Made by a program: the position numbers and the translations under genes. A stretch of 64,000 nucleotides of DNA from Octopus sinensis. Lineage: Eukaryota. The DNA lies in contig NC_043003.1 of NCBI RefSeq assembly GCF_006345805.1, forward strand, positions 16,678,001 through 16,742,000, written 5' to 3'. Every line of letters starts with the position of its first letter. Within the stretch, counting starts at the first letter, position 1. Below are positions 18,778-19,185 of the stretch, in pieces. The notes below the pieces were generated by a model. That model saw nothing but the letters and a program-made list of their open reading frames with translations, was not told where the DNA came from and made no database searches.

Positions 18778-19185
18778 AGGCGGCGAGCTGGCAGAAACGT
18801 TAACGCGACGGGCGAAATGCTTAGCGGTATTTCGTCTGCCATTCTGAGTTCAAATTCCACTAAGGTCGACTTTGCTTTTCATCTTTTCGGGGTCGATAAA
18901 TTAAGTACCAGTTACGCACTGGGGTCGATATTATCAACTTAACCCGTTTGTCTGTCTTTGTTTGTTCCCTTTGTGTGTAGCCCCTTGTGGGTAGCAAAGA
19001 AATAGGTATTTCGTCTGCCGTTACGTTCTGAGTTCAAATTCCGCCGAGGTCGACTTTGCCTTTCATTCTTTCGGGGTCGATTAAATAAGTACCAGTTATG
19101 CACTTGTGTCGATATCGACTTAACCCGGTTGTCTGTCCTTGTTTGCCCCTCTATGTTTAGCCCCTTGTGGGCAGTAAAGAAATAA
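18778..19185 (+). mobile_element. SINE-B tandem dimer (head + 2 body/tail-1 units)
   Basis: ggtatttcgtctg at 18826-18838 and again at 19005-19017, directly after tail aaagaaata. Confidence 0.85.

Follow-up and report, generated by a model that had tools for sequence, protein, structure and literature searches.

In crocodilians, Tx1-Mar, a target-specific long interspersed element (LINE) of the Tx1 type, and the SINEU short interspersed elements (SINEs) that it mobilises share one site in another repeat (Kojima 2015, PMC4494074). The same paper summarises further site-specific LINEs of the Tx1 group, namely, Tx1L in Tx1D of Xenopus, Keno, Kibi, and Koshi. Here we analyze a stretch of 64,000 nucleotides from Octopus sinensis (assembly GCF_006345805.1, contig NC_043003.1, positions 16,678,001 to 16,742,000, forward strand; "the window" hereafter, with positions counted from its first letter) in which a LINE assigned to the L1 superfamily has inserted at a defined site inside a SINE, which we call SINE-B, and in which copies of SINE-B form tandem arrays at that same site. 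A SINE-B copy consists of a 50-nt head, a body, and a tail, usually tail-1 or tail-2; the target, T, is a 13-nt sequence at the head/body boundary (G or C followed by GTATTTCGTCTG). The SINE-B system is a case of tandem targeting of the Tx1-Mar/SINEU type, and what is new in it is the location of the target within the SINE itself, head-less units that appear to be sealed by homology, the polarity of the arrays, their scale, and their satellite-like expansion. No description of these arrays was found in the literature searched, a search that was itself incomplete.

The comparison with the crocodilian system can be drawn in some detail. Two hot spots are used there by different families (PMC4494074), and SINE-B likewise has two, site 1 (T) and site 2. 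As in the SINEU-3 type, in which tandem copies are separated by one copy of the target site duplication (TSD), every internal junction of SINE-B arrays consists of tail-1 followed by the 13-nt T; the independence of adjacent copies that characterizes SINEU-3 is found here only in arrays of up to three units. In the crocodilian system, the target is a Mariner DNA transposon unrelated to the SINEs, which stand in tandem as full copies (PMC4494074), whereas the octopus target lies inside the SINE, so that the 50-nt head is missing from internal units and their 5' junction is seamless. Moreover, the octopus junctions number in the tens of thousands, and the arrays reach 10 or more units and later become satellite-like. 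With Tx1L/Tx1D and its relatives, the octopus LINE shares L1-superfamily affinity, an APE endonuclease, insertion into one defined sequence of a repeat or gene, and a TSD; however, the targets listed for those elements in the summary (PMC4494074) are not the LINE's own SINE partner.

The LINE is strictly site specific for the head/body boundary of SINE-B. In the window, the LINE (5,335 bp, 2102-7436; this and all the features of its locus are on the plus strand) ends in ggtgggcaataaagaaatt, which is tail-1-like, and is flanked by exact copies of the 13-bp sequence CGTATTTCGTCTG at 2089-2101 and 7437-7449; a sequence-only reading of the window had already described the junction sequence as duplicated around the LINE. 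The host SINE-B retains its head and T (2040-2101; head variant GCGTAGCC) on the upstream side, its body and tail-1 (7438-7618) have been moved 5.3 kb from the head by the LINE, and the whole is bounded by a 16-bp TSD of its own, cagatatatagataga, at 2024-2039 and 7619-7634. Elsewhere in the genome the picture is the same. Genome-wide counts refer to the 2.72-Gb assembly (13,516 contigs), and array statistics come from fetched loci L001-L080 together with the window, about 60 arrays from one chromosome end plus LINE-linked loci. At the 3' end of the LINE, TT, C or G, GTATTTCGTCTG, and the SINE-B body follow in 30/30 fetched junctions; at its 5' end, GTATTTCGTCTG is joined to T or C and CGCACATG in 27/27 fetched junctions and in 84/84 exact junctions genome-wide. 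The SINE-B bodies behind the LINEs differ in their mutations, indicating separate insertion events, and an all-against-all comparison of the fetched loci revealed no allelic pairs, so the insertions lie at distinct loci. In all nine elements with both ends available, the base before GTATTTCG (C or G) was concordant at the 5' and 3' junctions; the LINE TSD is therefore 13 bp and target derived.

LINEs do not use all copies of T equally. Their upstream neighbor is a head in 81 and tail-1 in 3 of the 84 exact 5' junctions, as against a tail-1-preceded share of ~41% among intact T sites (binomial P = 2e-15). Among the fetched loci, a unit stands between head and LINE in 2 of 27, and at least two units stand downstream of the LINE in 13 of 30 (P = 0.0025). 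This head-proximal bias argues that the target includes head sequence upstream of the nick, and, since the target needs this context, growth of the arrays is expected at their head end. Immediately before T, the base is C in 67%, G in 32%, and A in 0% of LINE-bearing heads, compared with C in 38%, G in ~46%, and A in ~14% of all intact heads. We considered the possibility that the head is carried with the LINE RNA, given that 67% of LINE-bearing heads are of the GCGTAGCC variant; this was ruled out by the C/G concordance in 9/9 elements, which marks the base as target derived, and is also opposed by the occurrence of the variant in ~38% of all intact heads. What is left to explain the enrichment of LINEs on GCGTAGCC heads is preference or age.

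The fold predicted for SINE RNA pairs nt 33 to 45 with nt 50 to 62, and the latter are exactly the 13-nt TSD. A 13-bp hairpin would thus have T as its 3' arm, and the nick in the bottom strand would be located where loop and arm meet. Two linked substitutions, at head nt 45 and 50, define the major SINE-B head subfamily, to which the ~38% of intact heads belong: compared with GCTTAGCG (18819-18826), the variant GCGTAGCC (2084-2089) replaces U45 and G50 with G45 and C50, a compensatory change by which the uppermost pair of the predicted hairpin would turn from U-G into G-C. In DNA form, the hairpin has Watson-Crick pairing at only 9 of its 13 positions. A role for the hairpin at the target site is suggestive only.

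The LINE and tail-1 are identical at 27 of their 33 terminal nucleotides, the usual signature of a LINE/SINE partnership. Queries with the 3' and 5' ends of the LINE returned 349 and 143 candidates genome-wide; identity, scored on 40 copies for each end, was 99 to 100%, and the family is therefore young. On its PDB matches the LINE is placed in the L1 superfamily. Open reading frame 1 (ORF1; 2269-3624) encodes a zf-CCHC domain (Pfam), and ORF2 encodes, from 3807, APE endonuclease and reverse transcriptase (RT) domains (Pfam Exo_endo_phos, E = 7e-11; RVT_1, E = 2e-21). The best PDB match of ORF2 is human L1 ORF2p (E = 7.5e-36, residues 5 to 559, from the endonuclease into the RT); R2 proteins in PDB match this fragment with E = 3.5e-4 or weaker and the RT fragment with E = 1.8e-11 or weaker. 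An ORF2 fragment found seven matches in the protein database, none of them informatively named. Membership of the Tx1 clade is plausible. In a 2026 repeat survey of Octopus vulgaris, L1-Tx1 was the only L1-like group recorded as recently active (PMC13282606), an indirect hint that is compatible with a Tx1 identity of the LINE. The window copy of ORF2 (3807-7190) runs through at least four frame segments even though the ends of this LINE are 100% identical to those of other copies; the breaks may reflect genuine decay or indels left in the assembly by long-read errors. A short way downstream of the SINE that bears the LINE, at ~8400-9800 and 12250-15290, the window holds copies of another repeat, ~500 to 660 bp long and in both orientations, which are 85 to 99% identical to one another and also occur in locus L003.

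Tail-1 SINEs accumulate at the same site. The junction 21-mer AAAGAAATRGGTATTTCGTCT has 33,704 matches in the genome and its reversed control has 0, a difference far beyond chance. The tail-1 20-mer, a pattern that misses about one-quarter of sites, matches 59,548 times; in the first 100 matches, tail-1 is followed by T in 56 to 57, by (TA)n or AT-rich sequence in ~19 to 24, by a sequence starting xGTA in ~13, and by the second head site in 1 to 2. The tail-2 20-mer matches 9,320 times, with T behind it in none of the first 100 (P = 1.5e-22 against tail-1). Genome-wide, tail-2 is followed by T within 26 nt in 18 places, ~6 to 8 of them direct and the others retaining part of the head. The sequence-only reading had suggested determining what fraction of tail-1 ends run into gtatttcgtct and verifying that tail-2 is never internal; the fraction is ~57% in the first 100 matches, as against 0/100 for tail-2, and the exclusion of tail-2 from internal positions holds to >99.9% genome-wide, no exception having appeared in the arrays examined. 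Tail-1 is also found as the last unit, as in array 1 of the window and in the LINE-bearing SINE. Three loci were rejected as counterexamples: L035 and L054 (tail-2 followed by a body) and L012 (two heads) are ordinary nested insertions elsewhere, the former two lacking a tail-2/T junction and the latter a T/head junction. Rare tail-2 tandems do exist (G000:C1:205230382/205230557, C2:24231732/24231913, and C12590:24451/24809), with spacings of 175 to 181 bp and ~360 bp. In their junction, TAGAAAAGAAATGCTTAGCGGTATTTCG, the tail-2 end is joined to the last 13 nt of the head via AGAAATG microhomology; they represent a different and very rare route to arrays.

Where terminal tail-1 copies lie outside SINEs, their TSDs start with GTAT (L008 and L018), lie in (TA)n (L002), or start with AGAAACG (L016 and L058). 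The machinery thus has a short core preference, for which SINE-B supplies the optimal extended site. Ends of the form AAATAGGTA followed by random sequence were also considered as products of read-through RNA, an explanation ruled out because in L008 and L018 the upstream TSD copy holds GTAT, which is hence target sequence. A second hot spot is present in the A-box-like region of the SINE-B head (for example, at G000:C1:16130568/16130785 and in loci L006, L007, and L056); here AAAGAAATA directly abuts AGAAACGTTAGC in 2,688 exact matches, some of them in arrays with a 217-bp period. The ends at this site read AAATA, as against AAATT in the LINE, and a related LINE or SINE subfamily may therefore be responsible.

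The three SINE-B arrays of the window, all on the plus strand, illustrate these features. The sequence-only reading had described each as a head followed by [body + tail-1]n and a final body, and all three do consist of a head, [body + tail-1]n, and a last unit. Their four internal junctions each consist of (a/g)agaaata(g/a) directly followed by gtatttcgtct, that is, tail-1 and then GTATTTCGTCT. The junction proposed earlier, aaagaaata(g/a), was thus right in that tail-1 always abuts gtatttcgtct; its letters need amending, since two junctions carry the one-base variant gAgaaata. Array 1 (18777-19184) comprises a head (18777-18826), which contains the A-box-like region and, from the predicted target hairpin, the loop and the 5' arm, and two tail-1 units. 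Unit 1 (18827-19005) holds T (GTATTTCGTCTG), a body with the B-box-like GAGTTCAAATTCC, and tail-1; it differs from the tail-1 unit consensus by 8.4% and has one derived state in common with unit 2, the terminal unit, which again has T, body, and tail-1 (19006-19184). The junction, aaagaaatag followed by gtatttcgtct, is at 19005/19006, and the TSD, agtgtgttaa, is at 18769-18778 and 19185-19194. The host of array 1 is a small element resembling a miniature inverted-repeat transposable element, with terminal inverted repeats (ttatttggtgtcaaaattttc ... gaaaacttttgacaccaaataa), at 18717-18768 and 19255-19330.

Array 2 (23359-23926) has a head (23359-23408), two tail-1 units, and one tail-2 unit. 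Unit 1 (23409-23576) carries a 16-nt deletion right after GTATTTC and has many private variants in common with unit 2 (23577-23760), so that these two are not independent and reflect duplication or conversion. Unit 2 is itself chimeric: 4 private substitutions in its first ~60 nt recur in the resident tail-2 unit downstream (unit 3, 23761-23926). The junctions are gagaaataa followed by gtatttcgtct at 23576/23577 and gagaaatag followed by gtatttcgtct at 23760/23761, and the array as a whole lies within a 16-bp TSD, atattaaaacc(c/g)cttt, at 23343-23358 and 23926-23941. Array 3 (32974-33375) consists of a head (32974-33022), a chimeric tail-1 unit (33023-33204), and a resident tail-2 unit (33205-33375), joined by aaagaaatag followed by gtatttcgtct at 33204/33205; unit 1 has private substitutions at alignment columns 54, 56, 58, and 66 in common with unit 2. 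No clear TSD could be defined for array 3. Since arrays 1 and 2 each lie within a single TSD, each sits in one original insertion.

SINE-B has A-box-like and B-box-like motifs, recognized by eye only, with site 1 between them; an Rfam gathering scan and ARAGORN on the window returned no family and no tRNA. The window also contains SINE-B relatives with a third kind of tail, ending in a long (ATT)n microsatellite, at 13576-13860 (plus strand) and 36180-36400 (minus strand), which probably depend on a different LINE partner that is not site specific.

The 5' junctions bear on how a new unit is joined to its target. End-joining of a full-length SINE complementary DNA (cDNA) is expected to place T next to a new head. 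This configuration has 76 matches in the genome, many of them in a few head-only arrays with a 65- to 66-bp period, versus 33,704 head-less junctions, a ratio that fits a 5' end resolved by homology. At site 2, where tail-1 is followed by AGAAACGTTAGC, the inserted segment begins exactly at site 2 and not at T, which argues against a fixed 5'-truncated RNA species and for closure at the point where cDNA and target become homologous. Nonhomologous joining does occur, as the site 2 insertion in L058 has kept its own head after a 15-bp TSD. The head-only arrays are the complement of the head-less body arrays and repeat the 50-nt head, GTATTTCGTCTG, and CCG/CGT (G000:C1:195358956-195359245, C7:15322785-15323079, and C18:40399010-40399169); a direct origin by target-primed reverse transcription is not expected for them, and they may be slippage products of the rare T/head junctions.

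Chimeric tail-1 units were found in 3 of 11 arrays of the head-(tail-1)n-tail-2 type, including arrays 2 and 3 of the window. They have 3 to 4 private substitutions in common with the resident tail-2 unit, relative to a between-array 99th percentile of 3 and a maximum of 4. None of the common substitutions falls outside the first two-thirds of the body, counted from its 5' side, and the 3' part and tail are master-like, a pattern that fits a crossover inside the body and completion on the resident copy in a manner resembling synthesis-dependent strand annealing (SDSA). Mechanisms of this kind have precedents. In the R2 and R1 elements studied in the Eickbush and Fujiwara laboratories, the 5' end can be sealed by annealing where template or cDNA includes upstream target sequence, and Gilbert and colleagues are said to have found in 2005 that L1 cDNAs can recombine with resident L1 copies into SDSA-like chimeras. 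In those cases, however, the homology comes from cotranscription with ribosomal DNA or from chance, whereas with SINE-B it is built in, template and target being one SINE family.

Relatedness among units falls into two regimes. We compared 94 full tail-1 units, taking as the threshold the between-array 99th percentile of shared private variants. In arrays of up to three units, none of the 17 adjacent pairs had excess private variants in common, and their distances equaled the sum of the distances to the consensus; the units of short arrays therefore appear to be of independent, star-like origin. In arrays of more than three units, private variants were held in common by 11 of 22 adjacent pairs, and the 10-unit array of L020 contains a 3-unit higher-order repeat in which units 4 to 6 resemble units 7 to 9, so that in situ duplication also expands arrays. 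Insertion therefore seeds arrays, and DNA-level duplication enlarges the long ones. In their array-private variants and higher-order repeat, long SINE-B arrays resemble other SINE-derived satellites; they differ in that the seed dimers apparently arose by targeted retrotransposition and that the unit boundary is fixed by an endonuclease site. Whole arrays lie within single TSDs, contain from 2 to 10 or more units, and vary in their terminal tail.

In our judgment, the best explanation, and a probable one, is that retrotransposition is targeted to resident SINE-B copies and the 5' end is resolved through homology, with the amendments described here. Site specificity, the TSD, tail sharing, the bias of LINEs toward the head, the rarity of duplicated heads, and the two relatedness regimes are direct observations. 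We infer from them the order of the nicks, the homology mechanism, and the polar growth of SINE units. SINE-B would hold the preferred integration site of a young L1-superfamily LINE, probably of the Tx1 type. On the evidence of the TSD, the cuts made by the LINE endonuclease would lie in the bottom strand where loop and arm meet and in the top strand 13 nt downstream, generating the 13-bp duplication. Tail-1 SINE-B RNA, carrying a copy of the last ~33 nt of the LINE, would be reverse transcribed by the LINE machinery at T of a resident SINE-B with either tail. The cDNA would be homologous to the resident head, T, and body, and closure of its 5' end would thus proceed through annealing or strand invasion instead of end-joining. 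The product would gain no second head and would read head-T-[body-tail-1]-T-resident unit, with chimeric units arising where the crossover falls inside the body. If recognition requires the head upstream of T, new units and LINEs would enter only beside the head, which would leave the original unit, often tail-2, in last place. Once an array had several units, unequal crossing-over or slippage could enlarge it further. The mechanism originally proposed from the sequence thus stands as regards site specificity, tail sharing, the pileup of tail-1 at T, the scarcity of T/head junctions, the exact start of insertions at site 2, and the chimeras; arrays do not grow by insertion alone, however, and targeting is not exclusive. 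The further ideas in that proposal, that an intact promoter would be regenerated, that tail-2 SINEs would be converted into tail-1 SINEs, and that the mechanism would be self-propagating, are hypotheses.

Several points weigh against this interpretation. Roughly 43% of tail-1 ends lie away from T, which makes SINE targeting a tendency and not a strict rule. Few arrays were sampled (about 60, from one chromosome end and LINE-linked loci). The expected age gradient was not significant: of the first and last units, the younger was the first in 13 arrays and the last in 8 (P = 0.38). CpG retention (0.74 in the head, 0.86 in the inserted unit, and 0.71 in the resident tail-2 unit) gave trends only (P = 0.07 to 0.13). 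Early in situ duplication of a unit still at consensus would mimic independent insertion, and the chimeric units could be explained by later gene conversion. The fold of the whole SINE is no better than that of shuffled sequence (z = -1.09), and the hairpin is a prediction only. A haplotig search for empty-site or polymorphic alleles with the joined unique flanks of three LINE-bearing unplaced contigs found none, returning only self-matches and an unrelated repeat.

The single TSD around each array would also be expected if a few ancestral multimers, such as head-tail-1-tail-2 dimers, had served as master genes and been retrotransposed whole as one multimeric RNA. The units are not separated by a T4 terminator, which, as a reading of the sequence, makes multiunit read-through by RNA polymerase III (Pol III) conceivable. 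We consider such an origin unlikely, since the number of units ranges from 2 to 10 or more and the terminal tails vary, adjacent units are as distant from each other as unrelated ones, chimeric units carry variants private to a single locus, and many different arrays are split by LINEs at the head-proximal site. Resident tail-2 units were also more diverged than the tail-1 units before them, with non-CpG mismatch of 0.109 versus 0.069 and CpG retention of 0.71 versus 0.86, although this is a trend only.

Purely DNA-level processes (unequal crossing-over, replication slippage, and gene conversion), operating without targeted retrotransposition of the SINE, have several observations in their favor: array-private variants occur in L020, L006, L026, and L043, a 3-unit higher-order repeat has formed, many private variants are common to the first two units of window array 2, and head-only 65-bp arrays and rare tail-2 arrays exist. 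As the sole mechanism, however, such processes are already contradicted, and we hold this account to be very unlikely. Duplication of a tail-2 unit cannot yield tail-1, yet about half of the arrays are of the head-(tail-1)n-tail-2 type; tail-2 units are about equally available as substrate but almost never internal; 0/17 adjacent pairs in short arrays have common private variants; and the LINE, which slippage cannot produce, occupies the identical site with a 13-bp TSD. Formation of multimers at the RNA or cDNA level, by an RT jumping between SINE RNAs and a concatemer then inserted anywhere, is the least credible of these alternatives and highly improbable: although template jumping is an established property of non-LTR RTs and each array has one outer TSD, jumps from the full RNA 5' end predict tail-1/head junctions, whereas the junction is always at T, 50 nt inside the element, the 13 nt of T are a true TSD around the LINE, and the terminal tail-2, the units chimeric with the resident one, and the head-proximal bias are all signs of integration into DNA copies already present.

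The targeting mechanism favored here can be extended to a closed self-homing loop, in which the target is the hairpin arm of the SINE itself and the arrays are both master genes and landing pads. We offer this extension tentatively and regard it as possible but rather doubtful. Copies at the site would be transcribed into T, so that the RNA would end in a 13-nt guide able to pair with the nicked target, in the manner of R2/R1 cotranscripts, and each insertion would re-create a head + body + tail-1 gene. Such a guide would explain why LINEs are 100% on target and SINEs, which are also transcribed from dispersed copies, only ~57%. The T3 run is the sole possible Pol III stop at the tail-1/T junction, and Pol III may therefore read through several units.

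If targeted retrotransposition into SINE-B is correct, this LINE/SINE pair uses the SINE as a safe harbor, with new copies entering old copies and not genes. At a defined nucleotide, SINE monomers would become tandem arrays that are head-less and polar, providing a countable route from a dispersed SINE to a satellite-like repeat, and the very high SINE content that has been reported from octopus genomes would be explained in part. Standard repeat annotation would miscount SINE-B arrays as many 5'-truncated SINE insertions. The 13-bp target with its head requirement is a natural substrate for studying sequence-specific integration by an L1-type endonuclease and RT. Should the self-homing loop also prove true, retrotransposition would directly seed satellite-like DNA throughout the octopus genome.
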